Source: Pavona decussata
Taxonomy: Eukaryota
DNA length: 64,000 nucleotides
Direction of reading: 5' to 3'
NCBI GenBank assembly: GCA_977016875.1
Contig: CDRNST010000114.1
Coordinates: forward strand, 558,001-622,000
The position numbers were made by a program, and so were the translations under genes. Shown here in pieces: positions 9,501 through 48,700 of this stretch. Positions within the stretch are counted from its first letter, which is position 1, and each line of letters begins with the position of its first letter. The notes under the pieces are model-generated. The model ran no database searches. It saw only the letters and a list, made by a program, of their open reading frames with translations, and was not told where the DNA came from.

Positions 9501-12500
9501 CTAAGGTTTCCCGATCCATAAGCCTTTTAATGTCAAACTTCTATTCAAAGCATACAATCCCTGAAAGTTACAATCTAAATTGTAAAACGTACCTCGAGCC
9601 TCCGTGGTAGCTTCCAATTCTTTTTGTAGTTCTTCAATTCTGTTTGTAAAAAGGTGAACTTCTTGAGCTCCACACTCCATCTCGCTACTCAAGCTCGACA
9701 TTGCAGTTTGTACAGACTCCACTTCCACTTGTTTCTCGCTTAACTGAACTTCAAGTCTCTTCAATTCCATTCCTTTTGCCTCAAGAGCTTCAGTCAGTGA
9801 TTGAATACTTGATTCAAGGGCGGAGATTTTGCCGGTATTTTCCTCCTCACGGGTCTTGTATTTCTGCAGCTCTCCATCGTTCCTTTCGATCGTTTGATTT
9901 TTATCGGATAGTTCATTTTCCATCTTGGTTATATCCATTTGCTGGGCCTCAATTTTCGATTCTAAGTCCGCGCAATAATGTTCTTTTTCCTCGTTCAATG
10001 ACTTCAACTGCTGCAATTCTTCTTCTTTGAGCAATAAATCCTTATCTATAGAAGCAAGCTGTTGTTCAAATGCTTCCACTTTTTTCTTTAATTTTCGTAC
10101 CATCTCCTCCTTCGAAGTAACAGATTCATTAAGTGATCCAACCTTGTCAGAAAGCTCTTTCCTTTCAAGCTTTAGTCTTTCATTTTCCTCTTCCCTTTTC
10201 AATACGGACTGATTTAATTTCTCGTTGAATTCCTGTAGAGTTCTTATTTCGTTTTCCTTGGAAGTGGAATTTTCTTTAGAATCCATCACATCTTTCTCTT
10301 TCAACTCCAAAGCCTGTTTAAGTGAAACAATAGTTTCATCTTGCTGTTTAGATCTCACTTCAGTTGCTTCCCTTTCCTCATTTTGTTTGTTAATCATTTC
10401 TTCCAACGATCGTATTTTTGACCTAAAATCCTCAGCATCTTGTAAATGTTCTTGCAATCTCTCTTGAATTTCACTACTGTTCTTTCCTCTTTCTTGTAAA
10501 CTAACCTCCAGAGTTTGCATCTGCGATTTCAAACTTTGCACTTCCTCCGAAAATTTGTTGTTCAGTTCCTTAGAAGTCGCCAACTCCATTGCTGTTTCTT
10601 CTACTCTTACATTTGAACTGTTCACCACTTCTTGATAATTCTCCAACTCTTTCTCCTTTTTGCTCAATGTCTCCTTACAATTTTCAACTTCAATATCCTT
10701 TGCCTGAACGCTTTTGTTTAAAGTTTCAACGCTCAGCTCAAGAGCTTTGATTTGCTCTTCTTGTGAAGTCAATGTTTCATTGGATTTAGTTCCTTCTTGA
10801 GCTTTTTCTTCAAGCTGTCCGCTCAATGTTTTCACCTTCTCCTGAGATTTCTGCAAATTCTGCTTTAACTGCTTCACCGCTTTTACCGCTTTCTTAAATT
10901 CGTCTTCCTTGCTTTGTAATTTCCCTGTAACATCATTGAAACTCTCATTAACTGCTTCAAGTTCGTTCTTCTGTTGCTCCAACCTGGAGGACAATTCTGT
11001 CAATCGGTTTTCTTTCTCTTCTAAACTTCTGTTCAAATTCTCAATAGTTAAAGCCATCGCTTCTTTCTCGTTGCTCAAACTTTCTACATTCTCATTCATC
11101 TTGTCCACGGACTGACTCAAATTCTCTTTTTCCCGAAGAGAATCACTTCTTAATTCCAGAAGTTCTTTTTCTTTAACAGCGTGCGATTCTTTCAATGCAC
11201 TCAGCTCCGATTTCAGTTCTTCTAATTCTTTACTCTTGTCGTGAAGTTCGTTTAAGGTTTCAGTTAGTTCGCTTCCTTTTTCATCGAATGACGCGTTCAG
11301 TGTTTGCACAGTTTCTTTCAAGCAATGATTATCCTGCAATGAAACACGTAGCATTGAAAGTAACGATCAACAGACTGCTACAAACAGGTTTATAACTAAA
11401 TTCGTGTTTGAAGAAAGTGTAGCTTCGCTGTCCGACTTGTGAAGTAATGGAAATGAAATTTACACATGAAGACTCCCGAAGCAAAGTTTTTTAAAAGAGA
11501 AAAACCGAAGACGCTTAAGGGCTTTCGATCATCACGAGATATTCCGAAGATTATTCGAACGCTTCATATCCCTCGACCGAAGGCTACCTTGGCAATGCTA
11601 AAGGCCAACCGAACGAATTCCGAAGTTCACAAAGTTTATTCGTTGTTTTAATCAAGTTGCGAGTCTCACCTGTTGTAAGCCGCTGTTAATTTCTTGCAAG
11701 TCAGAAAGCTGTTGATAATGCTGTGACTCAGTCGACAGTTGACCCGATTGGACTTCAGCCAGACGTCCTGATAAATCCTACATTTCAAAGCGAAAACAAA
11801 TCATTATTAACACGATGAAAGTACTTTTTAACAGTACATTTCCAACAAACCACCACGATCATAGCAACTGTCTATTTAAGTGCACACCTTAAGATCTTAA
11901 AGTCGTTTCAGTAATCGGTATTTTGTATGCAGATACAGAATACTGGTTTAGCTATTTTTCTGGTTGCCAAACAAATCGAGAATTACAGCGTTTGAATAAA
12001 AACCATTGCCTATACCAACGTTTGTAACTTTCTCTTCGAGAACATTGTCGAGTATGTGTATGAAGTCTTGGGAACCCGGCAGACTTGAGTGTCTGCAACA
12101 GCGGTTGATCGAGACGAAACCTTGCAAGATAAAACACTACACATAGCTAGGAGCGGAGTCAGGGTTGCCCCTAGTCGGGATAAAACAAGCGTTTGCAGAG
12201 TGTTACTCTGCAACTCTGTAACTGTATAATATTAAATTATGCACAAAGAATCACTAGTTTATCATCAACATTTATTTTGTCTTTCACTATACTAACCTTG
12301 TGTTCTTTGGACAAGGCGTCAAATTGCACGTGTAAGTCATCTAACTCCTCATGAAGCTGTTCGACATAATCATTCAATTCCTACAACGAAATGAGAGTTT
12401 TTATACAAAGAGTACTTACTACTGACGTGGTAGTCTGATTAAGAACAACTAAAAATACCAATTCCTGTAGTGTTAATCCATAGTTAGCGAAGTGTCAATT

Positions 12501-15500
12501 AAATTAACAGTTCAATTTTTTTAAAAAACAACACTGAACTCTAAATGTCACGATCTAACTCGGAAAAAGAAAAATGCGAGCTCCCAAAGGGAATCGACTC
12601 CATGACCTTCCAGATTACTGGTTGGACATTTTTGACAGATTTTCTGATTACCGGCTAGAAACTGTTTTGATCGATGAAAAAGGTAGAAAATTTTGGATAG
12701 ATAAAAAAGTCGAAGTGAATTCTTCCTGATACTTCAGAGCGGTAATCGCGAAATGGATGCATTGTGCTTAAATTCGCTCCCTACCGAGATTCACACCTGT
12801 GTTTCAGTTGATTGCGTGACTGAGGCTCTGGCAAGGCGGAAATTCCAAGTTGAGCGTCTGTTCCCGAAATTCCGCCTTTGGGGGTTTAAGCCAATTCGAC
12901 AAGCATTTCTTCACTTCTTATACCGAGAAGAAACAACACTTTAGCGAGCATAAACAAATCGTTATTTGAATTGAGAAAAACCACAAATGGAAAATAGACT
13001 CGATTCAGTAGGATTTCGTGAGATGTGAACTCAAGAATAATTAGTCTTCACACAAAAAGAATTTGGATTGAAATGCAGACTGCACGAAACACATACAGGT
13101 ATATGAGGATAATATTCAGTTCTCCCTTGCGGTTATATACGCCTTGAAGACGCATCCACAACACTACGAGATCTTAAAACAGTATTACAACAGAAAAGGA
13201 AAAAAATCTCACTAACCTATGGATGTCCTTACTTTCGAGTACATTTGGATTGGGAGTGAAATGCCGGATATTAAATGTGATGGAACATCTGAGGTGGTTT
13301 ACCCCTCTAAAAGCGAAATAATAAAATCCTTTGAAGACTTTTGAACTGAAAACTTGCACGTGAGGTTTTCGTGAGATGAGAGCCAGCTTTGAATCAACCG
13401 AATTAAGGTTGAGCTTCGAATCGAAAGCGGCTCATTGACACTTGATCACACCACGTGAGACGTGAGAAGAGTGTAAGATTTCTCGCTCGGTCACGCTTTC
13501 CGCGGCAGTTTTGTTACGCAAAGACTGCTCATAAAATCGAACAAAACATGCAAACTGAGGTTTAAAATACTAACGTTTTCAAATGCTAAGAAGACGTAGA
13601 GACGGGTGAATTATAAATTGAGGCAGCAATTGGCACGGATTGAAAAGATCATAAAACTGGTACAATTTTTTTCGGCTAAATAAAATCCTAATGATAAAAG
13701 TCAAAGGGAAAAGTCACACTATTACAGCTAATTATGCCGTCAGTCACAAGCTGACATCCAAAAAGCCATTACGGTTCCAAAGGGAAATCTGTTTGGCCTG
13801 GGACGCCAGATGTAAGCGGATGTTAAAGATAACATATAGCGTGACTTCATGTCAATTTATGGCTGATGTCACGCAATTTACATTGAATCCTAAATTCATA
13901 TCCACATAACCGGTATTACATAATACAATACCGGTTCTGAAGATGAAAACCTCCGTAAAGTACAAAGATGTCAAATAAAAGCTACTGAGCACTACTTGCA
14001 GCGTTCTTTGTACACTTTTTCCCAAACGGATATTTTAAAAAATTTCTGCGATTTCTCCTTAGCGAACCTTCGCCGTCAAATTTTCTTAGTGGCCGGTTCA
14101 ATAGAATCTAAAATTAAATCACCTTTTTCTCCCTCAGTTCATCGTTGTATTTTGCCTGTAGGTCGTCTTGAGTTCTAAACAGCTCTTCAATTTCCGCTTC
14201 TTGGTGCTAAAAAGGCAAACGTTACAATGTACATAAAATAACTTTTTGACGCCATCTTGTTACTATGTACAACACAAGATGCAACTAATTTTCGTTTTGA
14301 AAAAAACAGGAGAGCAGAAAATTCGAAATATCAATGTTCTTGATCACAAAGTGCTTAAATTAGACGAATAAAATTCATGTTTCTCCGGCATCCACGCGAA
14401 AATTACGCTGCTACAAAAATCATTGTGCAACGATGCACTACAGTGTACATGTTAGCGACGTTTCACAATTTGCATTAAACGAAGTTCTTTGATTAGTTCT
14501 AGTTTCCTACTAAGATTCCCTTCAACTTACCAGTCAAGGTAGACGAAGAACAAGAACGGACTTTGAACTAAGCGACACACTTCATTAAACAAAACAAAAA
14601 TTCACTACAACGGCATTGTCTGTTAACGGAGCGTCTGGTGTTTGAATATATAATTCAGAAATGCTACAATTCTTCCTGAGATTTATTGGAATAACAGTAC
14701 GTTAAGCCACGTATCAAACTACGAGACAGATATAAACAAATTATTACCAGACAAAACAGAATATTTTAAACGCTGTCTCGGTGCTATTCACGGAACAAAT
14801 ATTTCAGCAAGCTGACGAGTTCGCGAAGCGAATAAACGATTATAGTTGTAAGAACTCGCTGGAACAACCGGCCAAATTCAACAACCCAGCTTGAAACTCA
14901 CCAGCAATTATAGAAGGCTTCAAATCTTTACCTATGTCTCCGGGAAAGCAAGTTTCGGCCGAAAGAATCAAAGGACTGTAGCTAACAGTTGATAGATTAC
15001 TTCGGCAAACAACATGAATATGCAAAATTGATACGACACGTTTCTTGTTTAACTTATATCTCTAGCAACACAACGAGAATCAGCGGCAGGTGAAATTAAA
15101 TGCATGAATTCACGCGAATTCAAATGTTCTCTGAGCAAATAAGATGCGTTAATTTTAGAAATATCATGGCATTTTTTGGCAAATTATATCAATCCAAAAT
15201 CCGCTTATATAAGAAAACCAGCGCACAAAACAACGCCAATTTCATTTAGTCGGACATGAATGAATCCAACCCCATTTGTTTAATAATAAACGATTTGTCA
15301 GAATATTGTGGTTAGTAGACAAGGGGAAAGACAAGGTCAAATATTGTATGAATAAACTAGCTGATAATAAGTTTAGTTCACTTTAGAATCACAAATTGCT
15401 TAAACTATACAACGGGCAGAAAACACTGACACTGCAATAAGTACCAAACGTACTTTGCACTATTACATATTATTTGCATCTCATCAAATTGAACTAAAGA

Positions 15501-18500
15501 CAAGTAGTACTGGCAAACTCGTTAAAATTGATGAGATATGGAGTAACAGCCAGTTAAAATGCTCCTTTCCTCTAGAGGAATCCTAAAAGCATGATTTTTC
15601 ACCGATTATAAGCTACTATGGCTCTCAAACACTGATCCAAGTTAATTTAATCTTAGCCTTTCGCGCGAGTGACGAGACGTGGGATGCGAAGCCGCGTACA
15701 CTCGCGCGAAAATATGATAAAATTTCATAACAAGCCAACATCTCTTACAGTGAGAGAGGGGTGGGTGCTTTCAACATATAAACATTACATAATTAATGAG
15801 GAAGTACTTACAGCTTTTTCATCATTTGCATCATTCAGGTCCTTTGATAGCTGTTTAATCTTGTTTTCCAGTTCTTGAATCTCTTGCCGCGATTCCTAAA
15901 ACAAAAACCGAAACACTAAAATCCTGAATCGACGGTTTGCTTTAGCTCCGAGTGAAGAAGATTCAGCCATAATCAACGCTTTGCAAACCTTGTCCCGCGA
16001 GAAGCAGTTTTACCTGTTGAGTCTCGGTGGATAAATAAACCTCAATTGATTTCAACAAGATCACTGGCCGCGTAGCAGGTAGTTTCAAAGAGAGTCCAGT
16101 TTTCACCCTTGATTCGCAGCCTGTATCGAGTAAACCGTCGAGTCAAAATTTAAATCTCTGACCGTTACTATTCCAGTAAAGCACTTGTTTCAGATGACGT
16201 TGTTTGCTGTGAATTTTCACGCGGTTAAAAATTGGGGAGAAAATTTTCAAATATCGGCAGAAAGCACGATCGACTACAATTCGTTTCAACAATTTCAAAA
16301 TAAGCTTAAAGCACAAGCCATGAATGAATGAATGGAAGACAGCGAGAGACTAACTTGATTTGCAATTTAAAAGAGACTCGTGGCGTTAAAATTCTTGTTT
16401 AAACCATTCAGGCTGATACGTTACTAGGCAGCCAAGCGTTCGTGAGGGCAAATAAGATATCGTCTGTCAGCTGTTAAAAATCTACATCTACAATGGTCCT
16501 TTCGGTACTTCGCTGCAAAGACATGGAATGCGCTGCCGGACTCGATTCGCACCATGGCCGGCACGAGCGAATTTTTAAGAAGTATTCGTCATGCAGCATT
16601 TTAAAATTGTTATTATTGTGGTTAGCTTTTGAAATTGTAAATTTTAATTTGTAATTACACATGTATTGACACATGAATGATTAGATTTCCTAGATATTTT
16701 AGATTTTTAAATTTTTAGATTTTAGGTTGTTAGCTAATTTTTATATTTCTTTTTGTTTTTGTAACGTTTTTTTGTTTATTGGTGGGCTTCCTGCAAAGTA
16801 GCTTTTAGCTAAGTGGAGTGCCACGTAAAATAAAGTTCCTAATTCCTATAAATGGTAATTGGCAAAGGCTGCCCATCTCGCCAATAGTACAGGAGCTTGT
16901 GCAAAGTATAAAAATTAATAAACAGGCTACGGCCTTCAAAATACAACGCGGTGAACGACGACCTTGCATAAGAAAATAAAGATAAGAAAAACAAGAAAGT
17001 TGAGGCAAGAGGGCTCGCTGAAAATCCCGCTCTGTCTCTGATTGTCTGATGCTGCTTTGTAAAGTAGTCCAGTCGCTTATTGATTTGGGGAATATTGACA
17101 TGAATACTGTGCAAAAAACTACAAATGAGGTCACTGGGGCAACGAAAACCAACCCCCCCCCCCCCCTACACACACAGTGATCAGCTTTAATATTCTCCCT
17201 TACTGCTTGTGTTTGTAGTGACGGATCCAGACCTTCAGGTAAGTGTGTATGTGGGGGAGGGGGGGGAGGGGTGGGTGGGGACGCGCGACTCGCTTCCCTT
17301 TGTGAAACAAAATATCTCGTTGTTTCGGCCTGTATCAGTGGGCAGGGGAGGGAGGGGCTCCCCTAGTTGCGTCAATGTTTTCTCCCTGTGATCCCAGACA
17401 TACATCAAACAATGTATAGCTAGTGCTGTAGAGTTTCCCCCGCTTTCAAACAGTCAACAAACGCACGTAAACACAAAACACTATCGCCACAAACCTCAAG
17501 CTTGGTGTTTAGAGTCTTATGCTGTTCCTCTGCAATAACCAATGATTGTTTCGCTTGTTCGTTATCATTTTGGGCCATGCTCAACTGCTGACGTAAATCC
17601 TACAAGTACAATGACAAAACTTCAAAAATAAATCTCTGCTCTCGTTTCCCGATTGCCACCTACACGCCATTCCTATCATCGAACTCCTTGGAGCCGTCCC
17701 CAGGAGTGCGTTTCTCAAAGGCACCGAAAATGTTTCGGGCCCAAAAATTCATTACCAGAAACTCGTTTTTAGTTTTGAAAGCTACAACCTTGACAGCTTT
17801 CCAAAATTAAGAAATACATTAAGCTAGTTTGCACGAAAACCTAACACCAATCACTAGATAAGTGAAAAAGGGATTAGGAAAAATATTTCTTGTGCTCAGA
17901 AACGGACCCCAGGCCCCTTTCAGGTTTGCTTACAGTCAAGTGAACGCGAAACAGTCACGTGATAATTTTCCGCGCTTGCCGTTGACGGAAACACTGTCGC
18001 TCACCATTCGTGTTCGATTCTTCACGCAAGCTAGCTTTGTCCCCCCCTTGATGTGAAAAGTGCTGCATGATACCCAAAAAAAAGAGGTTACGAATAGCTT
18101 AGCTACCAACCAGCACCAATACAGTTTCATTTAAATGAAAAAACCCCAGCAATAACAACCTATAAACGACAAGACACAAGAGCGGCTCTGGCAAGCTTCA
18201 CGAGAAATTCGTCATTTTCTTTAAGAAAGTCAAAATTGATATGATTTACTTGATTTCACTTGCCAGGAAGCCAGGAGGTCATATCGTTCATGGCTCATAC
18301 TTTTTAACACCAAAACGTATTTTTAATCACACTAAGACTACAACTCGTGCCGGAATAGAATGAACCCGAAAGACATTTTTAGAAAGAAAAAGCACCATTC
18401 TGCTCCGAAAATAGCACACCATAAAACCCGCATGTGACAAGCTGCTTACAAACAAAAGAACCTTCTTAGACATGTTTGAGCAACGAAAAAGCCAAGCCTT

Positions 18501-21500
18501 TTAATATGAAGTATTAAAAGGTGAATAGCAAAACCGCAACCACAACTGACTGCGGGAAATCGTGAAACTGAAAACAGAATGACAAAATTCTTTGCGAAAA
18601 AATGAACGGTGAACAAGAGGAGGCGCAGATATGCAAACAAAAATAACCAAGCGTTTGTTAAACGATTAAAATAGCACTCGGATTTTAGCAAGACAAATGA
18701 GCAAAGCTGAAGAGATTAGTAGCAAAGCCAAATAAGCAAAGCATCAGTTTAGAAAAGCTAAAAGTTGGGAAAGGTTAGCTACGTGATTGGGAACTTTCAT
18801 GCAACGGCAATTTAAAATCGTGACAGACCGTGTGTGTAGTATCAAAGAAAGCTTCATTCGACGGGGCGTTCCGCAGTAAAATCTTTTTAGTTAAGGGATA
18901 TAGTGGGCTAGAAAGCGCGCAATCTTATTTTACCTTATTTTTCCACTGTCAAATAAAACCGCTGTCAAAGTCGACCGCGGGAATCATTACTCGTTGTTTT
19001 AATTCCAGTTCTTTCATCCTCTTCGAAAATACACTCTAAAAAACGGGGAACTTCTCATTACCAACCAATCTCAAGCTGATTCAAGGCAGAGATCAAACGG
19101 TGCTACCGAATGGGTCTCTGGGAACGAAACGGATTACCCACGACGCCTCACGATTCAAAATGGCAGCGATTACATGAAAAAGTTCCCGGATAAAGCGCTA
19201 AGAGACCGGCAATGAGCTGCGGCACGCACGTGTGGGTTAAAAAGATCAATACCGTAGTCGTGCTTTGCTCCTGTAGAAAGTTGTCTTGCAGAGCGATGAG
19301 TTCGTTCAGGAGTGTGCCCTTCTCTTGGGAAAGAGACAAGAGTTGTGCATTCAGCGCCTGAAAAACGGCATGCAGTGTGATGTCACTGAGAGCCTGACTG
19401 TCAATCAAACTGATTTAAAAGGGTACAATGAGCGCATGCGTGCGAGGTGTTGACAGCAGAAATGAAAGTCAGCGGTTGCAATGCTATAATTGTGAGTGGG
19501 CTTCAAAAGTGAACGTTGTACGAGAGCACAAATCGAGTGCATCGAGGATAGAGATCTGAGTAAGATTTCAATGTCGCAGTATAAAATGGAAATCATGGAA
19601 GGCGCTAAGTGTTTGAACAGTTAGGAGTTTCGCACGAAGGTATTCCAAGTATTTTATGGTGTCAAAATAGAGTTCTTAGTTATGATACAACTATGAATAA
19701 AGAATGAATCGTAAGACCCCAAATAAGCCCGCTTAGCTGTTTTGATTAGCCTTGTTTTTCAAGATATTCTTATGATCAAGCCCAACCAATTTTGAAGCGC
19801 AAAATCCGTCAAGTGATGAACTCACTATAAAAAGCCAACACCCAAAATAAGCCACTGAAACAAGTCATTTGAACAAATGCACGCCCAGGGCTTATACTGA
19901 GAATTTACCAAGCAAACCCGCAACCGTTGAATTCTCGCCCCTCTTGGGGGCAGATATTCCTCTACGAAATAAAGAGGAATGAAGACTATCACTTAGTTCT
20001 TGGTTAACTTCGTGGTAATAGTCAAATCCGTTTGGAAAAACTCGAAAACACTAGACTACTTACAGTAACATTTCACCTTTTTAGACAACTGACAACTCCT
20101 CCACGCCCTGTCAAGACCCTGAAGAAGAACATAACACTAACTAGCAAACGTCGTTACCTCTTCAGTTTCCTCAGCAGTTTGTAAAGCACTTCGTAAGTTT
20201 TTGAAGTGACTTTCAAGGGAGATGTTTTCCTCTGCTAAAGCTGCAAACTGGTTCTTTAAATCCTTCAAACAAAATGAAGCAAATATAAAGAAAACTTTAA
20301 TACTTTTAACTACGCACTCTGAATACAACCAGGACTGACGTTTCAATAGTTTTGGCTGAGCAAGTTATAAACAAAACAGTATTTCCACCTTATTGTTTTC
20401 CTCAGCTCCCTTCAACTGCTCTTCTGCTGTTTTTATTTTCGCTTCTAACGCCACTTTTTCCTCTGAAACAGTCGCAAGTTTTCTTTCTAAATCCTAAGAA
20501 ATTAATATTAATCAATCTCATTAGTGTCATGACAAGAAGAGAGTTTCTCAAACTCATTAATAATTCATCAGAGAAAACAAAGAAAATCACTACTGTGACC
20601 GTGATTTGGATATGTTTACCTAATTATCATAAAATTTTGCCAACTTTGGCCTTGAATTTCTCCAAGAATTATTGATCATTTGAGAAGCCATATCAAACAC
20701 TCAAAAGTATGTTTCATCAGATATCCAAACAGCTCCAAGTCGTTTAAAAAAACTCGGCTGCGCCTCGTTTTTTCAGCCTACGTCTCAGTGTTTGGATATC
20801 TGATGAAACACACCTTCTCGTGTTTGATATATTACTTAAAAGCTGTTAACTAGAGTTAAGACCTCTCACTCTATACTACAAGTGAGCTCGGAAAACACTT
20901 TTTCGAGATCATCTTTGCTCTCTCGTAACATAGTGAATTATCAACCCAATACGACGAAATGATACTGACAGCAACGCAACAAACGCTCTGATTACTCGAC
21001 AACAATTTTATTAATACATCCAGCAACAGAAGCTGTGGCCAATCATGCAAAGATGAAGTTGCGCGTTTTGAAATGTCCATTCTAATTCCTCGTCATTCGT
21101 TTTCCTTTCCGTTTCCCAACATTTTTGTCACGATTTTCTACCAAAGACGTTCTATTGTGTGACAATATTTGTGACAACATGTGCGTGACAACACCCAATA
21201 TTGTATCGCGTTATTTACCATATCGGTGGTTTTACCTTGTTTCTCTGTTCATATTCTTGGTCTTTCCCATTTTCAACAGTTTTCGCCTGCTCTTGGAATG
21301 TCGTCAACTTCATATCAAGATCCTTAGCAAAACAAATACAGATAAGACTACTGTTTTTGTGAGCCTATCTACAGATCACATACCAAGCTTTATGATCATT
21401 TACAAATTCGTTTTGGGAGTTGAACATGCCGAGGAACCGGAATCTTTGTTTTAGAAAAGTAGTAAATTTTCTGGACAACGAAACAAGGGAGCTAACAGTC

Positions 21501-36500: not shown

Positions 36501-36660
36501 TTTCAGACTTAATTGCATGTAAGCTACATGTATATCTTTGCCTTTGAAAGACAAGACTCTCAAACTTTCCTTCTTTCTATTATTATGTGCAGTAAAACTA
36601 TCTGTATGCACAGTATAAGAAGCACCACAGGGCGTGTAGCGCAACCTGCGAGCCAAGCGA

Positions 36661-36712
<52 letters not shown>

Positions 36713-39700
36713 TAAAGAAAACGACAAAACCTTTAAGTTTGCAAAACATGTAAAGTTTCGACAGAGACTTCTGTCATCTTCAGTTGGTTAATGTACACAG
36801 TGTTTGAAGTTGAATTTACAACAAGTAGACAAAAATGCTAATTNNNNNNNNNNNNNNNNNNNNNNNNNNNNNNNNNNNNNNNNNNNNNNNNNNNNNNNNN
36901 NNNNNNNNNNNNNNNNNNNNNNNNNNNNNNNNNNNNNNNNNNNNNNNNNNNNNNNNNNNNNNNNNNNNNNNNNNNNNNNNNNNNNNNNNNNNNNNNNNNN
37001 NNNNNNNNNNNNNNNNNNNNNNNNNNNNNNNNNNNNNNNNNNNNNNNNNNNNNNNNNNNNNNNNNNNNNNNNNNTTTCCAGCTGTGTCAATGGCTTTTCA
37101 TTACCTGACCTACACTGTACATCAAAATTTTAAATCACCATGATCAAGGACAATAATTGTGTAACAACCCAAATATTGACTATATGTAAGAGACCGGCAA
37201 TCCTATGAATTGCCGCTAGATTTTCCCAAACGTATTGACATTTTGTAATGTTCAGAGACACCCACAACTTACATCATGATTCACTTTCAGTGTTTTGAGA
37301 GATTTCAGAGCTTTCTCCTTCTCTGCTTTTACTTTGTTGAGTTGATCACCAAGCTCCTAAAAAAATAAATTCCTTTTTTGGTTAGCAAATATATAAAAAA
37401 AAATTCCACTCAAGTATTACAAAGATTGATTTTATTTTAAAAGTCAAAATAAAAGCTGGCAAGCTTGCATTGATTTAGTAGCAAGGACACCCAGTGGGAA
37501 GTGTTATTCATTTGTAATCAATATTGTAATATAAGCTGTATTTTTTTTTTTTTAATTTTTATTTTTTAAATTTTGTAATTCCTTTAATTCAGAAATTCAG
37601 AATGCTGAGAGTATTTCTCTGTTTAAATCTAAATTAAGATCATTTATCCTAAATGGACAACTCCTGTTTTGAACATGCTGTTTTATGTTTTGCTGCCTGT
37701 TTGTGTATTGATAAATTAAATAAGCTACGCCTAAAATCCTGATTTCAAAGGTGTCATTTTTTTGAGGAGCCTGTAGCTCATATAAGCACCAATGGTTTCT
37801 CCATGGGCATCCTCGCCATATGTTTCTCACTTTTTTCTTATGTATTTATCTTTTATATTTTAATATACAGCTATTTATTAACATGTCAAATCAAAGCTTA
37901 AAGCTTAAAGACATCTTCAAAGAGGCTGCCACCTCATCCACTTGATATCCTAGCTAACATTTAATTCTTTCATTCAAATGGTATGCCATCGATCCTATAT
38001 ATCTTGACTGGATGGACAAGGCATAGCTGATTTTTTGATGAACTTATTCATAAAAAAAACCCACAGAATCTTGAAGCCTTGTCTTAGAGCTTCATACTCT
38101 GATCCGACAACATTATTGGAATAGCTGTATATTTGAAACTGAAACTGAAAACTGTATAGTAAGGTTTTTTTGTAAGATTGTACTTTAGTGTAGGTATTGT
38201 TAGTATAGTATGTATAATAGAAAGAAGTGTTTAGTATGGTAAATAAATTATTGCATTCTGTGTCATGCAAAGCTAATAAAAATCATAAAACAAAAGATTG
38301 TAGTTAAAACCAAACAGTTGCAGGTGTGGACATGTATAGTTACATATTTTCACATCTCCTAGTTTTTACCTGTCTATCTTTGCTATTAGGCAAAAGTTTG
38401 TTATGTTACCAGATAAAAGCTAATACTGGTAAATCAGTCGTAATATTGAGCTTCTAGGTTTTAAAATTCGGCACCCTGTTTAACTGCCATACTAAATATA
38501 ATTTTCACAACATCAAATACTCCATTTTTCACTTTGTTTTAATTAGGAAAATTTGATATCCCAAATAAAAGTCTCTTATTTTTTACTAATTTCAAGAAAA
38601 TAATGCTTCACATTATTTTTCACATTTTGTGAAAATTTAATTTAAATAGCTTTTAATTAGTTGTCACTCTTCCAAAACCAAAAAATATCCTCAAAACAGA
38701 TCTTGACTTCATAATTCAAAGGAACATCTTCTTACCTTGACATAAAACTTGTTCTCCTCATTTTCCTTGACAGCTGTATCTAAGCCTTCTTCCACCTCCT
38801 GTTGATGACTCTGGGGGTTTAAATGGTGAAATTGTTACTTAAGTTGTTTTGTATTTAAAGCCTGGTTTCCATACAGGTATGATCACAAACGATTGCAGGT
38901 AATAGCAGATGATGGCAAAATCAGCTGCCCAGAATTCTGGAATCATGGAGAAACAACCTTCTGAGGTCATGTGCCGTCATTGCAATTCTGAGATAATGCT
39001 CAAAGGCAAATCTCAGATGATCACAATGATACCCTTAATTAGCTTAGTCTGTTCAACAAACATGCAACAATACAGTGTTTTGTAATGCGTTAGTAGTAAG
39101 TCAGTAGTAAGTCAGTCATAATTCATAAAGTACCAAATAAAGCACATGCAGATGTTTCTAAAGCAGCCTTCACACGGCAAACTTGTGTTGGCAAACTCAA
39201 GTTGGTGTGTGTGAACGGCACAAAAACAGTCGGCAAACAAGTTGGTAAACTGTTGGCCACAAATAGAACTTGCCTCTATTCTCGCCAACTTTTTCACCAA
39301 CTTTTTTGTGTTAGTAAACTCATATTTGATGCTCCAAGGGTGGGATTTCTACTGATATAAGGTTTCATTCAAACCTTTCTATTTTTCCAGCGCTTTCTGT
39401 TTCTTCTTTGGCGATTAACATACAATAGGACCAAGACACAAGCAGCAACTCTTCATGAGTGCCACTGCACTGCGTCGGCCATGTTGCAAATTTAGCGCGT
39501 TGTGAAGGCACGAGTTGCCAACTTTTTGAAGTTCGCCAACACAAGTTTGCCAACTTAAGTTTGCCGTGTGAAGGCCGCTTAAGGGGAGCAACAGCTGCTC
39601 CCTGACCATACAACTGCAAAAGTTACTGCAATGTCGTCATTTTGCTTATTAGCAAATGTTAGTCAAAATTCAAAAATAAAATAAAATTCCAACCAATATA

Positions 39701-42700
39701 AAATGATGCATCCGATAAATAAAACAAAAGTACACTAATTTACAAAATAAAATTGCTTTGGAAACACAATATTATTAATAAAACTATTAAAATAGTATTG
39801 TTAGTAAGTATTAGAAGATTATTAGATGGTTAGCAAATTACACTTACAGCATTCTATATTAGAAGCACCAGTTGCAAAGTCAAAGGTTAATTAATTATAC
39901 TTTTTGTAAAACCATGCATTACAGCAAACAAGTCTGGCAATGAAGGAGTTTTTCTTTTCTTTTTTTCTTTTTTAATCAAGCAAAGCACAAAACGTCAGCA
40001 TGCTTCACATGTTGAAGCACAATGTGAGGTGTAGTGACACAACACTGTTATTCAAAAAATCTTTAGTAGGAAACTGAAAATCATACATTTTTGCTCTGTC
40101 AATTGCCACACCAGTTTGCCTTTAATCTCACAGTAAAATGCATCACACTCCTGCCACTTAATTGAGACTGCTTGATCAATCAGTATATGACTGATATTAC
40201 ATATAATACAATCAGCTTTCTCAAAATATTTTTGAGTAGTTCACTTGACATAACAGTTTGATGTAGTTGATAGAATTGTTCAAACTTCAAAGGAGTTATG
40301 GGGAAAGTTATCTGTGAGCAGCAAAATCACCGGCTGTTGGTACAATTTGAGAGCTGGGCTGTATGATACATTTTGCAGTGATATTAATTGTAACTCAAGA
40401 GAAAGCTGCATACCCTTGCAGCAGCTTCCCGACCCTCGTAATCTGTACGCATGGTTTCCAGTGCATTCCTAAGGTGCTCTGACTCTATTCTAGCAAGTTC
40501 CAGATCACTTCGCAGCAACTAGCAAGTTAAATGTGATAATCAGCAAGAGTGACAGAATACCACCAACTAGAATATTGAGCCTTACAACGTAATGAATAGT
40601 TACTAAACTAGTAATAATCAAAGATTAGGAAGTGCGTTACATGATCTTAACCCGACGCTCTCTCTCATTTGCCAAGTTGGTGATGAGGTTATTCACCCCT
40701 GTAAAATTGCTGAGGGATGCCAGATATGCGTCCCAAGATCCATTCATTCGTCATCCCATACAATCTCTACTCCAATCTGTATTAGGAACGTGTTCTTTCT
40801 ATGCTGACTGCAATAATGTACATACTATTTTATTGACATAAATAGTACAGTAAATTCCAACCAGTTTTACAGTAAACGGTTTTGTTTTCCGCTTATTTGT
40901 TTGTTTGTTTGTTTGTTTTTGTCAGCCAAACTCATTTTGAAATGGAAAGTTCCCTCCAATAATAAGCCACATGTAACCCACCTTTACCAAAATAAGTGAA
41001 GAAATGAGTATTTCTAAATTGCTTGTTTATGTTTATTCATTTGATCATTGGTGCATTTAGATGGTCTATTTCATTGTTGTAGTAGTTGTTGGTTTAAGGT
41101 CATTCCCCTGCTTTGTAGTATGCAACTCTACTGTGCACAATGGCAAAATAAAAATTTTATGTTTATTTCCAGCTAGCTACTGAATGTTACTCAACCTTAA
41201 TTGCACATAACAACAAAATTCTTAATTTGCATTTTGCTCAGAAATCAAGGTGTTTTCCGTAAGACTCAGAGGGGTTTATATCCAGCTTATTACTGGAATA
41301 AAAAAAATGTTTTGAAAGGAGCTATAGCTGGTTTTAAATTCAGCCTTAAAGCATCATAATAAATGTTCGGCAGGTGCCCTGGGCGATGTTGGATGTCATG
41401 ATGCACAGATGCTCAATATTGTTTCATACAAAAGAACTTCTGCTTATTGATAATAGTGGCAATCATATGATGTCACAAAATCCAAAATGGCAGTGAGTGG
41501 AAAATTTAAAAGTGAAAATAGGCAATAATCATAACTAATTCTTGGCACACCTGAATGTCATTTCTACTTAACAAACTTAAGTTTAGAACTTAGACATTAT
41601 TTCCAACAATTTAATGTCAATTTGTTGTCAGAGTAGGGGGATCCATTAAGGACCTACACTGTTAGCTGTTCACTTGGACAATTAGGGAATTAGAGAATAT
41701 AGGTGCAAGGAAACCACAGATACATGACGTAATGATTCTCTAACTAACCTCGTTCTTTTCTTTCAACTCCTCATTTGCCGCCAAGAAATGCTCATTAATT
41801 TGACCCGCATCCTCACTGCTGCTTAAATCAGCTCGTCTCTGCCATGCAAGCTGATCAAGTTTGCTTTGACATTCATTTTTTTCTACTGAAAGCTTCTGTA
41901 GTTGGGCTTTAAGATCCTACAAACAGGATTAGGAAAGGTAACTAATCTTGCGATAATATTATTACATTATAACAATGATATTGTTAATCAGGTCATTGTT
42001 TAACCTCTCTTTTCTTTTTTCACAAACAGGCCTTGAAGAAGCCAGCCCCAAAAGATAGGTAAGTAAAGGTTGATGAACTAAAGGTCTTCCCTGCCTGTTG
42101 TCATAAACTCAATTCAATTTCAAACTTTGAATTGTTAGCCATTGTCTTTGCAGTTGTTATAGCTGTAGTAGACTTCCATGCAGTCCCCTTAAAAACAACT
42201 GCCAGGGAGACTACCTGTAGCTGTGGTGGCTAGCTGATAGTTGCTACTAACAACCGTTATGTACATTGCAGCGTGTTTTAATTTATGCTCATATATTGCT
42301 TGTAGCAGTTGCGGATAATCACGTCTCCACCAAATTTAATATTCAAAGTTAGGAACTAGTAAATAGGGAGTTTTAATAAGCAACGACGACGGCAACTGCA
42401 ACTACAACGCCGCAAAACAATAGGTTTTATGAGCAACAACAATCACTCTGCACTTGTGTTTTACATTTTGGTACATTTCTTTGCCGTCCTCTGCAAAACA
42501 ACAATGTGAAATGACCACATTTAAGGTTTTGTGGACAACGTCAACGGCGACGGTGAATTTTTCATTAAATAAATTCTTCCTTAATTTGTACGCCACGCCT
42601 ACCAATTTGATTCCAGGATAGTTCGCCATTTTTGTAAAAGTTGAGCAAGTTGAAATAATCGCAAAGTAGCACAAGTGAAGTAAAGATATATATTTTTCAG

Positions 42701-45700
42701 GTGATGTTTTTGTTGCCGTTGCCGTTGTTGTTGCTTAAGCTCCCTAACATGTGAATCCCAGCTTTGGATCTTGGAAGAAAATGATTACTGACACAATGCT
42801 GCAACTGTAACAACCAACCATTCAACAACCAAATTGCTCACCCTTATCTCTAGCTCTGCTCTCTCACTGTTGGAATCACCAGACACCTCCAGGGCCTTAA
42901 CAAGTTCTTCCTTTTCCTCCATCAACTTTGCCACTTTGTCTTGAAGCTATAGATTAAATTCAACAAGGTTCAAGCAATCAAGATGAACTCTAGATACAAA
43001 AAAGGCCAGTTCTCTCAAAGTGCCAACACCCAATGATTTTTTCCCTACAGTCCAACATTTGCAACTTACTCAATACAGGACACCACCCCCTCCCCTCCCC
43101 CAATCAAAGGCAATAACAACAATAACTTATTACTCATTCTGTACATATTGATCAAATGTACATGTACATTACACACTGAAATCTAAAACTCTAGACCAGA
43201 ATTTCCAGTGAAGATATATTAATAAACAATACTCAACCTGATCTGAAAAACTTAATATAAAGCCACAGTATCAATAAAATATCCCATAATATAACTGATT
43301 TTTAGAAATCTAATAAAGAAATACATGTACAGCATCAAGAGAATATCCGAGGAATCTAGCCTTTGCCACCAACTAAAGGTCTCCAAGTCCACAAATAAAA
43401 ACTGAAACAGATTTGTAGAGGCATGGCAGTGGAGTGGTTGCCACATTAAAGGGTTGGTGCAATGGACTAGTAAACATCCCATCATAACGACAAATATTTA
43501 CACAGGATAACACATCAGTGCAAGAAGCAAGTTATTAATTAAAAGGGGTCCCGTGGAATAATAACTACTACGTAGTACTTATTGCAGAAAACAGAGCAGC
43601 CTAGGGAAATACGAAAAAAAGAGACAAAGAAAGGGAAAGGGGGAAAGGGCTCTGCCCTAACTACCGTATTTTTTTGGTTATAAGGCACACTCAGTTTTAA
43701 GACACACCATTAACTTTAAAATTAACTTAAAACAAATTGTAACAAGTTTGCAAAATGAAACTTTCATCTACTGGTGTAAATACCCAGTTATAAGACGCAA
43801 CCAGAATTACAGGAAATTTTTTTACCACATTCACTGTAACTACAACAATCTGCTTCCAAATTTGCTGATTACCGTCGTTTCGCGCACATTTTTCAAGCAT
43901 ATCTTCTTCCATGTCAAACTTACCCAAAAGATTTTCAGTTGAATTCATGAGGCCTTTTCATGTCTTTTGTGTTGACTTATGATTGTGTCTACTGGGTCAC
44001 TTCAACCTTACTGTGGTAACCATGAGGCAAAAATTTGCAAACATTTGGCATTCAGACAGGAATCCAAGCACCCTTCTATAAGCTGAGTACTCTTACCTCA
44101 CTCATTGCTACCACAGAGTCAGTATTCTCAACATTGGTTGATTGCTGGCTTTTTGCAGAATCAATCTTCATTTCCAGCTCCTGCAAGCACAAGAATAACA
44201 TTTTCAAATCACATTTGGGATCTTAAATCAGGCCCTAAAAATGCCAACATGATCATTGTTATTATTGTAACCCCCTACAGCTGCATAAATAAACCTGACC
44301 CATAAGACCTTACATGAAAACACCCTCCCACACAATAGCCCCAGGTTAAAATGCAAAACCTTAAAGACAAGAGTTGAAGTTCTTGCTTCTTTTTAGCCTT
44401 AACACTTATGTGCTTTTGATCAGTGAATCTGTTTGGCTGTTGAAGATTTTGAATATGCTCAACTTTTCATTAGAATCTGTGGAAGTCACTGATTTAACCT
44501 CTACTTCTCATGTAGTCTTGTCAACTTGCAATGCTTGCAATCCTTATGAATCTGAATTTTTGTTGACTCTCATTCTTATAATCTGGTCCAGGCTACATGC
44601 TTTCCCTATGAAATGATGTCTAAGAATATTGAATCTAAAAAGTCTAGGACATCCCAGGTCAGGGTTTAAAGCCTTTTGTAATCAGTAAGAAAATTTTGGG
44701 CATTAGGTTTCCCAGATGTGGCTCAACGAAATGTGGTTAAATGTTGCAACAGAAAAAGAAAGAGGGATGCCTGATCACAAACTGGACAACAAACTCAATC
44801 CAAGGCCACTCTCCACATCTACAACATACATGTAGGAGGCAGAAACAGGCAAAGTTTGGAATTACTAGGAAAGGGAAGTACAGTGGGGGGCTGTGTACAG
44901 CTGTAGCATGTTTAATAAGTGAACAAGGGCATGTGGCTGAAGTGTTCACAAACAGTTCTCACCTTGCAGTTTTCTAAGAGCTGCCATTTCTCTTGTTCAA
45001 GTTTTGTTAATGTGTCTTGAGATTTTTCTTTCTCTAACTGGAGTTCCTATTAAAAAGTGGACGAGGAATAATCAATGCCACAAGTTTTCAAATAACTACA
45101 TTGTAAGCATAAGATACAAATTTGATGCCCTCAAGGTACTGCCAGCAGGTGGTAAGACAGTTAGTAGTTTAATTAGAGAAACATAACAAAATGTACATGT
45201 ACACAGATATCACTAAGAGCCAGCTACCAGCAAATTACGCTGTCTGAAAGATATCAAATATCCCCAGCAGAAATTTCAACACAACACAAAATACTTGAGG
45301 CTTATTTTAAAGGTGCACAGTCCAAAAGGGCTGGCTGGGTTTATTAATTAATGAGCCTGCGAATGTTTATCTTAGCTACATTTCCACATGTTTGCTAGTT
45401 TGGAACTGAGTAAAGGAAAATCTACCTGAATCTTCTGCAGCAGGTCTTGATTATCCCTTTTTAGCTGTTCCTGTGTTTTGTCCTCTTGAAGAGCTTGCAG
45501 TTCCAAAGCATCTTTGTACTTCTGTATTTTGTCACAAAGGAATTAAAATTTCCTAAAATTAATGGGTTATTCAGATAACAAAATTTGAGTTTTTTTACAT
45601 GTCAAAAATAAGCTGCCATTTCTGTGTACAGCGGAAGCTCTCTTAACGGACACTCTTGAAGGCGGACAGCTCTACTTACCTCCCATACAAACTCTGTATT

Positions 45701-48700
45701 TACACATTCCTGTAAGCTGACATTCCCATAACTGGCCACAGACACTTTCAGGGGTTACTTTTCCTTTGTTTTTAAGCTCCCATAAAGGGACCCCCGAAAG
45801 GAAATTCCAAGAAAAGCCCAACAAAACGCGATAAACTAGCCACGCAACGAAAAACGCTGAGTAGAGGAAATTTCCGAGCACGTGCAAAGGAGCACGCCTA
45901 AACTGCAAGAGAATACCGCTGGCCACGCAACTGCCTGCAGACCAGAACCAGGCCCCAACCAGTAATGTAACAACAAATCCCCAAACGCTAAATAAATGTG
46001 CTACCCGTGCTCAAACTATACGCCAATAAACGCTAACGCCTCGCTACGCCACGCCACCAAGGAGCAAACTTGCACCAAGTTGTTAACTAAGTTAAATTAC
46101 ATTTAACCCTATTTTAATCAATGAACCTTGGATCGTTGTTCCTCACAATGATTTTACAGTGCAGTTATTTACTTCAGTTATCTCCATTATCGCCGCAATG
46201 TATAAGGCAATAAAACAAAAATAAAATCATGTAATATGGTGTTTTTTTTTTTTTTGGCATTTCCAATGTTTACATGTATCATTAGCTTGGCAAGCTCCCG
46301 CAAACGGCCAGCTACACCTCTAGTGCCCACTTACAAGAACCATTCTCGTAAGCAGCCAGCTCCAGTTACGGACACCTTTTCCACGTCCCGAGGGTTTCCA
46401 CTGTAGATATAATAAAAAATGGGCATCTGAAAGGCATTTTTCACTGCATACCTTTGCCTCCTTAACAACAGTTTGATATTCTTCCTGTAGAACTCTAAGA
46501 GATTGCTGAAGTCCATCTCTCTCCATCACAACAGCAGAAATATCTTCTTCAAACTCCTATACAAGTTCAATTTATTATTTTACAATTAGCAAAGCTACGA
46601 GACTCAGCAAGGAATACTATTTTTTTAATTACAATTCATTAAAATAACAACAGCATAGTACTTTGTTAATCTTCAGTTAAAAAACACGAACTAACTTGTG
46701 AGTTAACACTGGTTTGTTGAAGCTTGTTTGTTTTTCTTTTCTTTTCTATTTTACAAAGATCTTCCATCCTAGAAAGTAGTTAGTACCCAAGGAAAATGAC
46801 ATTATTGCTCTTGCTAAACAATCAGAACTGGTCTACATATCATTGCTAGAGTACCAAAATAAAAAATAATAATTATTATTACTTCAACAAGAAATGGTTT
46901 CAAAGAGTATTATTATTATATTATTATTTTCCTCACAATGATTTTGAAAGATATTTTTTGAATTCATCTTTTTACTCACTGTTCACAAATCAAACTTTCT
47001 TATTCATTTATTCATTCATCTCTTCGTTTAATATTCATTGATAAATTATTTATTTATTTACTTATTTATTAGTGCTGAAAAATGCCCATCCCCTTACTTT
47101 GACTGTTTTCTCATGTTCATGTTCCAACTCACTGTACATTCCCCGTAAACCATCATTTTCTTCAAGCATCTTCCGTCCAAGTTCAGCAGCCATTTTTAAC
47201 TCTTGGTTTTTCTTTAAAATCTGATTAATGAGAGGTTGATAATCTTTGAATTTAAACATTATATTTAGACAACCTTTGTATGTTTTTATCCGAACAGTAG
47301 CTTAAGGCTTCAATTGAACATTTAATATTTATCTTATATTATATTTAGAGTACTGTTATTTTTCTAGCATTTAAAGCTCACAGTACTTAATAAACCCTTA
47401 GTGTTTGCAGTTAACAAACTTTCAGTGCAAGGAAACTGCTTATAACAGATCAATGAAATTATTAGAATAGCATTTATAAAGTTAGAATACATATGCACAA
47501 GTGTCAGAAACACTTCATATTTGAAATTGTTTGAATTTTAAGAAATCTACTTCCTATTTTTGTTTAAAAGATAACGTGATTCATACAATTTAATAAGAAT
47601 TTCTGTGCTTAAATTTCTATTACAGTCGAACCTCCACTAACGGCCACCTCTCCACAATGGCCACATTTTTTTGTCCCGGCAGACAGTCCATACATTACCT
47701 CTTGTATAAACAACTCTACAACGGCAACGGCCACTAAAGTGCATCCCCGACTGCCAAAATAACCTCTCGATATCCACCAGTACAGTTCTTTTTTGCAAAA
47801 ACCTTTTTTTATAAACTGATGCAGTAATCGACATTTGTCTTCGGAACATTATATACGTATTTTGATTGTGTTCCATTTATATGCTGCTGAGTAAGCATAA
47901 ATTTTCTGCAATAATATAGCCAATGTTGCAAACTTTGCTCGTTTCGTCTTGTTAACATTTTGATTCAAAGCATTATTTATGTTTTATTGCGTATTTTATC
48001 TATATATATTATTTAAGATTGGATTACCATTATAGGCTACAGTAAGCATGAACTTGGCACAATAAACATGTTGTACTTCCTGAAAAAAAGGTGTCATATT
48101 ACACCCCTACCTCCCCATAACGGCCACCTCTCCGCAACGGCTGCTTTCTTATGTCCCCAAGGTTGCCGTTGTGGAGAGGTTCAACTGTATTTAATGCTTA
48201 TTAAATTAATGTGCTGTCACTGATAACTGCTCCCCTCTTCATAATTACCTTGAATTTCCAATCAAACATAGTTTTTCATTGTCCTTCTTTAAAAAGAATC
48301 TTTGAAAACCTGCCTACACATTTATCTCTTAAATCTGAAAACCATAGTCACTTTAATTAAACTTTGAAAGAACTAAAGAAGACATTCAAATTATTTTAAA
48401 AAGCCCACTCTTTAATTCCAACAGCCTCATACTTGGTCACTTTACTATTTTTAACATGCTCTTGCCATTTCTGACAATAGTCAACTTACACCCGTAATTT
48501 ACTGACATCCCACAAACCCAGCTACAAAGGGCAAACAGTGAGTTCTTATCCACTCTTGAAATGGGAAATGTACAATAATTATAATAATATATGATATACT
48601 TCAAATTCGTTTTTGGTTTGAAAGTTGTGAAATCAAAATCAAACTGGTTTATGGTGATATGAAAACAGATAATATCACATCAGACAAGTATGGGAAATAT

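Follow-up and report, generated by a model that had tools for sequence, protein, structure and literature searches.

The DNA analysed here, referred to as the window, is a stretch of 64,000 nt from Pavona decussata (C114:558001-622000, C114 being contig CDRNST010000114.1 of assembly GCA_977016875.1), and its minus strand carries a golgin gene in which 33 consecutive exons, from 47220 down to 11670, are every one of them phase 0-0. For the gene model the window was joined to 12 kb of the downstream contig, and the assembly scanned amounted to 602 Mb. Exons were called by a dynamic programming (DP) chain in which all three phases were allowed and the splice-site matrices and codon log-odds were retrained on the locus; the exon finder held no heptad information. 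A frame-consistent chain of 58 exons without a stop leads from the N-terminal LESLPKEDL exon (49729) through the array to a GRIP domain, giving a model of ~2,640 amino acids (aa), ~2,370 of which lie in the window, where a preliminary description of this DNA had counted ~2,400. The exon finder returned no start-codon exon (first coding exon). The GRIP domain (PF01465) was located on the same strand at C114:553072-553194(-), with 66-67 bits against a cut-off of 24.4. This corresponds to about -4,800 to -4,930 in window coordinates, 4.8 kb past window position 1, in line with the earlier statement that GRIP was not yet reached within the window. The locus very probably encodes a GRIP golgin of the GCC2/GCC185 type, whose N-terminal rod would be lengthened by the ~1,270 residues that the array contributes.

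Exon boundaries were compared with three further genomes, the close relatives L013 and L015 (ENA assemblies) and the divergent relative R2 (ENA ERZ25067872, four loci), which turned up in word searches that used the 70-aa exon x23 and a 78-aa open frame containing x4 and that matched near relatives only. RNA was sampled at 33000-38999 only, in four runs (X1, X2, X12 and X19) whose run type is probably RNA. The exons are numbered in the direction of transcription and listed below with coordinates, strand, description and support; a slash marks the splice boundary, and lengths that are not a multiple of 21 nt (odd lengths) are given as whole heptads (7k) plus residues.

49645..49729, minus strand: x1, 5' exon (LESLPKEDLIKYVKKQ...), outside the array; DP, 96% aa identity in R2; probably ends in phase 1 at GAAG/gtaaag
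48818..48927, minus strand: x2, 5' exon, outside the array; DP, R2, alignment; probably phase 1 at its start (after tatag/) and phase 0 at its end
47098..47220, minus strand: x3, 123 nt (41 aa, 7k+6), AAELG motif; DP, same length and AG/GT in L015 and R2
46452..46556, minus strand: x4, 105 nt, 35-aa module; DP, L015, R2
45426..45521, minus strand: x5, 96 nt (32 aa, 7k+4); 96 nt with AG/GT in L015 and R2
44963..45046, minus strand: x6, 84 nt (4 heptads); DP, relatives
44097..44180, minus strand: x7, 84 nt, polar second half with weak heptad signal; DP, relatives
42842..42946, minus strand: x8, 105-nt module; DP, relatives
41749..41916, minus strand: x9, 168 nt, serine-rich linker in mid-exon; DP, relatives (165 nt in L015, 168 nt in R2)
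40414..40518, minus strand: x10, 105-nt module; DP, relatives
38736..38810, minus strand: x11, 75 nt (25 aa, 7k+4); RNA depth over 75-77 nt in X1, X2 and X12
37273..37356, minus strand: x12, 84 nt; RNA depth over 83-84 nt, DP, R2
36844..37074, no strand: assembly gap (N) in the x12-x13 intron; sequence
36018..36083, minus strand: x13, 66 nt (22 aa, 7k+1, contains Pro); RNA depth over 66-67 nt, open in phase 0, L013, R2
35085..35189, minus strand: x14, 105-nt module; spliced to x15 in X1, X2 and X12 contigs, relatives
34243..34347, minus strand: x15, 105-nt module; spliced to x14 (X1, X2, X12) and to x16 (X1, X2), relatives
33030..33134, minus strand: x16, 105-nt module; spliced to x15 in X1 and X2, relatives
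29684..29779, minus strand: x17, 96 nt (32 aa, 7k+4); DP, relatives
28907..29176, minus strand: x18, 270 nt, a 165-nt exon and a 105-nt module apparently fused; DP, relatives
28165..28281, minus strand: x19, 117 nt (39 aa, 7k+4); DP, relatives, 100% aa identity in R2
27269..27373, minus strand: x20, 105-nt module; DP, relatives
26395..26604, minus strand: x21, 210 nt, two modules; DP, relatives
25805..26014, minus strand: x22, 210 nt, two modules, closest paralogue of x23; DP, relatives
25032..25241, minus strand: x23, 210 nt, two modules; DP, relatives
24492..24596, minus strand: x24, 105-nt module; DP, relatives
23849..23953, minus strand: x25, 105-nt module; DP, relatives
22460..22564, minus strand: x26, 105-nt module; DP, relatives
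21236..21322, minus strand: x27, 87 nt (29 aa, 7k+1); DP, relatives
20389..20493, minus strand: x28, 105-nt module; DP, relatives
20158..20262, minus strand: x29, 105-nt module; DP, relatives
19253..19357, minus strand: x30, 105-nt module; DP, relatives
17495..17599, minus strand: x31, 105-nt module; DP, relatives
15812..15895, minus strand: x32, 84 nt; DP, relatives
14123..14206, minus strand: x33, 84 nt; DP, R2
12297..12380, minus strand: x34, 84 nt; DP, R2
11670..11777, minus strand: x35, 108 nt (36 aa, 7k+1), last array exon; DP, R2
9593..11333, minus strand: large coiled-coil exon after the array, 1,741 nt, phase 0 to 1; DP
1..8677, minus strand: in-window 3' third of the gene, 14 mixed-phase exons (of the 22 after the large exon), one of them a multiple of 21; DP

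The Rab-binding and GRIP exons of the gene lie further on, 3.9-5.0 kb past window position 1. Words sampled from the large 1,741-nt exon are present in at least 19 public runs among the matches listed.

Three exons of the DP chain were corrected. RNA contig depth gave 75 nt for the exon at 38810-38736, where the chain had 63; a missed 66-nt exon at 36083-36018 was added on the strength of RNA depth, a phase-0 open frame and its presence in the relatives; and the exon at 45521-45426 was extended from 57 to 96 nt, conservation with L015 beginning at the acag/AAG acceptor. All three are of odd length in the final model, and the 63 nt first called for one of them happened to be a multiple of 21, which proved spurious. 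Scanning the long introns for additional phase-0 exons gave no good-scoring candidate. The unbroken phase 0-0 run of the preliminary description stands, and its count of 34 falls to 33; R2 has 34 array exons, since x18 is split there. Upstream, x1 and x2 better fit a phase-1 intron (donor GAAG/gtaaag at 49645, acceptor tatag/AA at 48927), implying that the phase-0 run begins with the intron ahead of x3. The acceptor of x3 is the least certain boundary of the array, and conservation with L015 extends 62 nt further upstream. This conserved stretch (47098-47282) holds an in-frame ATG at about 47257-47259 and may represent another first exon or start site, or merely the conserved end of an intron. 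The exon itself carries K-M-A-A-E-L-G-R-K-M-L-E-E-N, a motif resembling the AAxxG 'CC1-box', and ranks with the best conserved exons of the array, with 93-95% aa identity in divergent relatives. In genomic open reading frames (ORFs) from five other assemblies, similarity to x4 ends exactly at the KEAK/V donor.

The assembly gap in the array begins 199 nt downstream of the x12 donor and ends 761 nt upstream of the x13 acceptor. As both neighbouring exons are phase 0-0, the frame is continuous whatever the true length of the gap. The sequence on either side of it looks non-coding, with a (TTA)16.7 run at 36663-36712, a distance of 130 nt, and the orthologues of x12 and x13 are 425 nt apart in R2 by exon coordinates. 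RNA contigs cover x12 and x13 at equal depth, and the x12-x13 joint is not among the matches listed; an exon may be hidden within the gap.

The lengths of the array exons are strongly quantised. Multiples of 21 nt account for 24 of the 33 (fourteen of 105 nt, six of 84 nt, three of 210 nt and one of 168 nt), a tally for the corrected model that agrees exactly with the one in the preliminary description. The nine odd-length exons encode 41, 32, 25, 22, 32, 90, 39, 29 and 36 residues, leaving 6, 4, 4, 1, 4, 6, 4, 1 and 1 residues modulo 7. In seven of the nine the remainder is 1 or 4 (P = 0.008 in a post hoc test), and additions of one and four residues are the classes of the classical skip and stutter. 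Two controls lacked the pattern: the gene's own 23 exons downstream of the array use phases 0, 1 and 2 and include one multiple of 21, and the second GRIP golgin gene of the genome (C20:58268-64584), which is much shorter and consists of few large exons of mixed phase, has none. The quantisation is a marked tendency rather than a rule, and x7, x8 and x9, which hold polar linkers, may be multiples of 21 partly by chance.

Quantised length goes together with a fixed heptad register. For the analysis of register, 20 units of 35 residues were aligned, namely the fourteen 105-nt exons and the six halves of the 210-nt exons. L, I, V, M or F occupies position 2 in 15 units, position 6 in 19, position 9 in 13, position 16 in 18, position 20 in 17, position 23 in 14, position 27 in 11 and position 30 in 8 (with Ala in 7 more); polar residues (K/R/N) fill positions 13 and 34, and 16 of the 20 units have Glu at position 12. 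The core d positions are thus 2, 9, 16, 23 and 30 and the core a positions 6, 13, 20, 27 and 34, a column pattern which means that the exon begins at heptad position c. The module takes the form [DE]-L-x3-L-x5-E-[KR]-x2-L-x3-L-x2-L-x-E-E...[KQE]. When the register was assigned to each exon without a continuity prior, c stood at the start in 28 of 33 array exons and b at the end in 23, compared with c at the start in 4 of the 17 3' control exons long enough to score. In our own scoring, a Viterbi register over the whole model runs continuously across the junctions, and all register shifts but one are intra-exonic, mostly in odd-length exons. These data support a placement of the rod exons' boundaries at one fixed heptad position, between b and c, and with it the earlier proposal that the register is aligned to the splice site. 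The accompanying statement that most exons begin [DE]-L-x-x-x-L has to be relaxed, as [DE]-L-x-x-x-hydrophobic opens 15 of 33 exons and only the looser x-h-x-x-x-h (h, hydrophobic) a majority of 21. By analogy with other golgins, the rod would be a two-stranded parallel dimeric coiled coil.

The modules are related to each other beyond their heptads. In an ungapped comparison of the 20 units, the mean score in register was 20.6, compared with 0.8-8.5 for units rotated by whole heptads, which marks them as a true 35-residue repeat. Module homology had z = 13, and z = 11 when the four splice-adjacent residues were masked. The unit profile also matches exons x9, x12, x18 and x19, which were not used in training, at or near the exon start, while it found nothing periodic in the 1,741-nt exon. 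Taken together, this supports the core exons as copies of one homologous module of 35 residues, or five heptads. In its own whole genome, the module profile returned the locus and one weak match, C436:1671007-1671111 (+), with E = 0.005, and no second module array. The weak match sits in a giant coiled-coil ORF of 2,524 aa that consists of a single exon. Module sequences have kept their lengths at an identity of about 15-30%. At the DNA level, similarity among the array exons is left in x22/x23 only (75% over 83 nt, running 7 nt into the flank), and DNA comparison of the array introns found none in any pair. As the introns are unrelated, the duplications would be old and the common lengths long held.

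Comparison with the relatives shows what has been retained. L013 and L015 carry x3-x10 and x13-x32 in order, with an exon identity of 92-100% and AG/GT kept at every boundary, and the three relatives' genomes together cover all 33 array exons. Relative to the close relatives, the exons have no indel in 1,968 aligned nt and the introns 113 in 11,012 nt (~10 per kb), with mismatches at 2.2% and 4.8%, respectively. The proportions of synonymous and non-synonymous differences (pS 0.074, pN 0.009) give a pN/pS of 0.13. The sole length exception in the close relatives is x9 in L015, which is one serine codon shorter. In R2, every array exon is present in order with clean splice sites, the exon order being kept from x1 to the large exon; exon identity is 50-100%, and intron read-through bears no resemblance to the window introns. 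Six exons differ in length from those of the window: x7 (72 vs 84 nt), x8 (99 vs 105), x11 (63 vs 75, an acceptor 12 nt downstream being used), x22 (201 vs 210), x27 (a full 105-nt module vs 87) and x16 (104 vs 105, a 1-nt deletion). A seventh, x18, is split in R2 into 165 and 105 nt by a phase-0 intron placed exactly before the E-L module start, and the remaining 26 array exons are equal in length to those here. At least one odd-length exon, x27, is a canonical module minus 18 nt, and the long exons would be exact module fusions, unless R2 gained an intron at a module boundary. Between species, lengths have changed by 2, 3, 4 and 6 residues in six, possibly seven, exons, and no whole module has been gained or lost. 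The comparison of exon numbers that the preliminary description called for therefore shows all modules kept, the variation in R2 being confined to one extra intron and six or seven exon lengths. The 1-nt deletion in the R2 orthologue of x16 (L018:14967-15071) brings a stop into the 105-nt module; it is either an error of the long-read assembly or a broken exon that needs skipping.

A mechanism that would produce this architecture starts from a 105-nt exon for a 35-residue, five-heptad module as the ancestral unit. Duplication of exon-plus-intron units would have multiplied the module into a tandem array, which would leave every intron at a MAG/GA proto-splice sequence, in phase 0 and on the border between heptad b and c. 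The 84-nt exons would be four-heptad relatives of the module, and the 210-nt and 270-nt exons exact fusions of neighbours through intron loss. The nine odd-length exons would consist of whole heptads plus 1, 4 or 6 residues, with skip- or stutter-like discontinuities or polar linkers inside them, so that the following exon starts at c again. Purifying selection on sequence and length would maintain the pattern. The resulting extension of the rod by ~1,270 residues would nominally amount to ~190 nm of coiled coil, in a protein that presumably acts as a Golgi tether. We infer exon duplication as the origin of the array, as had been proposed before, from a module homology (z = 13) aligned to exon boundaries and from the symmetric phases of all 33 exons. 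Removal or fusion of exons leaves frame and register intact, as had been proposed for skipping, and in R2 the 270-nt exon x18 is two exons divided exactly at a module boundary.

The order of events could also be the reverse: the 35-residue repeat may have arisen first in one long exon, with introns inserted afterwards at a recurrent MAG/GA proto-splice site. The boundary codons (K/Q/E, then D/E) form the proto-splice consensus in nearly all units, and the array introns lack similarity to one another; the R2 intron inside x18, absent here, could be such a gain. However, intron gain requires at least 30 independent insertions in the same phase and register, whereas duplication of exon plus intron accounts for phase, register and module homology by a single mechanism. 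The 1,741-nt neighbour shows that long intron-free coiled-coil exons exist in the gene, but it has neither the 35-residue signal nor introns of this kind, and the similarity of x22 and x23 extends 7 nt into the flank. We consider intron gain unlikely.

The preliminary description had gone further and suggested a splicing-tunable ruler, whose tether reach could be set in five-heptad steps (~5 nm); in such a model, regulated inclusion or skipping of cassette exons would change the reach by ~4-5 nm at a time. All exons of the array are symmetric, and a start at heptad c is seen in nearly all of them, so the skipping of whole-heptad exons would keep frame and register, and exact fusion or splitting at module boundaries has been tolerated in evolution. 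If real, the x16 deletion in R2 would force the skipping of that exon. In contigs of X1 (1,332 nt) and X2 (901 nt), x14, x15 and x16 appear as abutting 105-nt pieces, and in a contig of X12 (1,442 nt), from a second organism, x14 abuts x15 and the depth also fits x16; these are spliced transcripts. In the same contigs, per-bin depth fits 84 nt for x12, 66-67 nt for x13 and 75-77 nt for x11. No skipped forms of x11-x16 were found among the matches listed to contigs of X1, X2, X12 and X19, although contigs drop rare isoforms. Assembly graphs normally break where isoforms diverge, and the unbranched passage of the contigs through the sampled exons makes abundant skipping of x11-x16 unlikely in these runs. 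By abutting pieces or by depth, contigs of three runs (two organisms) take in six consecutive exons, and none of the forms listed skips one; on this small sample, 6 of 33 exons, the exons are spliced constitutively. No isoform specific to a tissue or state appears in these data. For regulated skipping this is a weak negative, the unbranched contigs of 901-1,442 nt reaching through x14-x16 and, by depth, x11-x13; in addition, the three relatives have kept every module, under purifying selection. We regard a ruler tuned by splicing as improbable, and hold the same doubt about the broader idea that selection for an adjustable rod length, evolutionarily or by regulated skipping, has kept the whole-heptad layout with frame and register intact. 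If it were true, single-module skipping would give tethers that differ by 4-5 nm between tissues or states, making golgin reach a regulated variable.

The assignment to GCC2 is based on the exon just upstream of GRIP, which matches PF16704 (Rab_bind, the Rab6/Rab9-binding coiled coil of GCC2) with 20.3 bits and E = 5.7e-4; the match is a 24-aa exon piece at profile positions 32-55 of 66, below the 27-bit cut-off, with about one third of the domain scored. The sole PDB match of this piece is GCC2 3BBP (chain 3BBP_D), weak at E = 0.043. Together with the GRIP score, this partial Rab_bind match beside GRIP agrees with the GCC185-type golgin proposed before. Pfam scans of single exons returned generic coiled-coil noise only, apart from GRIP and Rab_bind, and an exhaustive representative search with the 580-aa exon gave 9 weak matches to fragments or generic coiled coils and no full-length ortholog. 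Alternatively, the gene might belong with other GRIP golgins (golgin-245/GOLGA4-like) or might have arisen when, in its own lineage, an N-terminal coiled-coil gene became fused to a GRIP golgin. The genome-wide scan gave two GRIP matches, to be taken as a lower bound; the GRIP exon alone has golgin-245 as its best PDB match, weak at E = 0.22; and the dynein-adaptor-like AAELG motif of x3 is not known from human GCC2. Both the Rab_bind exon, with GCC2 as its sole PDB match, and the stop-free, frame-consistent chain that links the N-terminal exon with the array and GRIP speak against such an origin, as does the same exon order from x1 to the large exon in R2, and we judge it very unlikely. Finally, a modelling artefact or chance, in which boundaries were picked to suit multiples of 21, is rejected as having next to no probability: the first model did get three exons wrong (63 instead of 75 nt, 57 instead of 96 nt, and a third overlooked) and the x3 acceptor is uncertain, but the heptad-blind DP allowed all phases, the three corrected exons all ended odd-length, the boundaries are confirmed by RNA contigs and by the genomes of three relatives, and the pattern is missing from the gene's 3' part and from the other golgin gene.

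Overall, a register-aligned modular rod, built by duplication in a GCC2-type golgin, appears highly likely. Several points weigh against this interpretation. The naive binomial P of 5e-14 against an expectation of 1/7 counts related exons as independent and is overstated, given their shared ancestry. Quantisation is not strict, with x7, x8 and x22 at 72, 99 and 201 nt in R2 and x9 at 165 nt in L015, and length changes are about equally frequent among multiples of 21 (3-4 of 24) and among odd exons (3 of 9). The register comes from our own simple hydrophobicity scoring and not from a published coiled-coil predictor. RNA covers 6 of the 33 array exons, with three junctions seen as abutting pieces and the rest by depth. 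The GCC2 assignment relies on a sub-threshold, partial domain match and a weak PDB match (E = 0.043), and the N-terminal resemblance to GCC2, an L-P-K-E-D-L-I-K motif, is one that we presume. How old the array is, and whether exons were duplicated or introns gained and the x18 intron was lost here or gained in R2, is derived by parsimony from the window and these relatives.

Further observations were made along the locus. The x19-x20 intron contains a 106-bp minisatellite in 3.2 copies (27504-27842), and ~ten copies are present at the same place in L013 (L013:6279-7363), so the copy number varies. Short intronic elements at 33880-34010, 34590-34735, 35590-35765 and 37575-38100 have contig depths from the hundreds up to the thousands in each of the four runs, along with numerous inverted and 'goes back' joints; these sequences are transcribed, highly repetitive and similar to miniature inverted-repeat transposable elements (MITEs) or other transposable elements (TEs), and 33875-34001 is an inverted repeat. 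The x16-x17 intron measures 3.25 kb here and ~1.05 kb in L013, leaving ~2.3 kb unaligned (30640-32993), with direct repeats at 31692-31851, 32436-32597 and 32607-32771; the extra sequence is probably an insertion. In R2, the x14-x15 intron (L018:11609-13161) has two ORFs with zf-RVT (reverse-transcriptase zinc-binding) matches, a retroelement insertion that is absent there in the window. A 6.1-kb block (19522-25622 vs L013:9551-15675) is 98% identical, introns included, while neighbouring blocks are 84-94% identical; such uneven divergence along the locus may reflect introgression, a shared haplotype or local constraint. Upstream of the golgin, on the opposite strand, three relatives have an RNase_T-family (PF00929) exonuclease gene (L015:1-252, L016:1445-2299 and L017:822-1700), whose counterpart region in the window would by alignment fall above about 53.8 kb.

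Long coiled coils are commonly regarded as spacers in which length matters more than sequence, and how that length is encoded and conserved in genomes has been little studied. The array is a clean case of gene structure mirroring protein register, with 33 introns in one phase and, in nearly all exons, at one heptad position. Its 35-residue module has held its length at a sequence identity that has fallen to about 20%, and adjacent modules are joined or separated precisely at their borders between species. Its modules are natural register-neutral units of deletion or insertion for testing golgin length in vesicle capture.

Among the closest known systems, human GCC2/GCC185 likewise has a C-terminal GRIP domain and a very long rod with breaks; its GRIP domain follows a Rab6-binding coiled coil, matched in part here, and we take it to share one large central coiled-coil exon and the N-terminal L-P-K-E-D-L-I-K motif with the gene described here. 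Human GCC2 measures ~1,684 aa, compared with ~2,640 here, the excess being the array of 33 exons and 1,270 residues between the N-terminal exons and the large exon; a golgin of the GCC2 type can thus exceed the mammalian one by about 1,000 residues. In coiled-coil spacers and rulers, length is conserved while sequence diverges, and the flexibility of GCC185 has been discussed in this context (Truebestein & Leonard 2016, PMC5082667). The array behaves like such spacers, its modules being 15-30% identical with lengths held, and its exons free of indels while the introns have ~10 per kb. That review mentions neither exons nor splicing; what is new here is that conserved length is tied to exon structure. 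Full-text literature searches returned nothing on heptad-sized exons or on exon arrays in golgins.

Two other systems resemble the array in gene structure. Nebulin is made of 35-residue modules encoded largely by symmetric exons of the 105-nt class, is alternatively spliced and has been proposed as a thin-filament ruler. It has in common with the array the 35-residue module, ~105-nt exons, symmetric phases, expansion by exon duplication and the idea of a ruler. Each nebulin module, however, is a single helix that binds actin and carries an SDxxYK motif not present in the array, whereas the modules of the array have the a/d hydrophobic heptads of a two-stranded coiled coil; and nebulin is alternatively spliced, while no alternative splicing has been shown for the array. 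Fibrillar collagen genes contain arrays of 54-bp exons (and exons of 45, 99, 108 and 162 bp), each beginning with a Gly codon. In collagen as in the array, exon length is quantised to a structural repeat, introns are in phase 0 at one position of the repeat, and tandem duplication and exact fusions are part of the pattern. The quantum is 9 nt (Gly-X-Y) in collagen and 21 nt (one heptad) here, where the unit is 105 nt, the protein is intracellular and about a quarter of the exons, unlike those of collagen, depart from the quantum by 1, 4 or 6 residues. With these differences, the array is the coiled-coil analogue of collagen's 54-bp exons.

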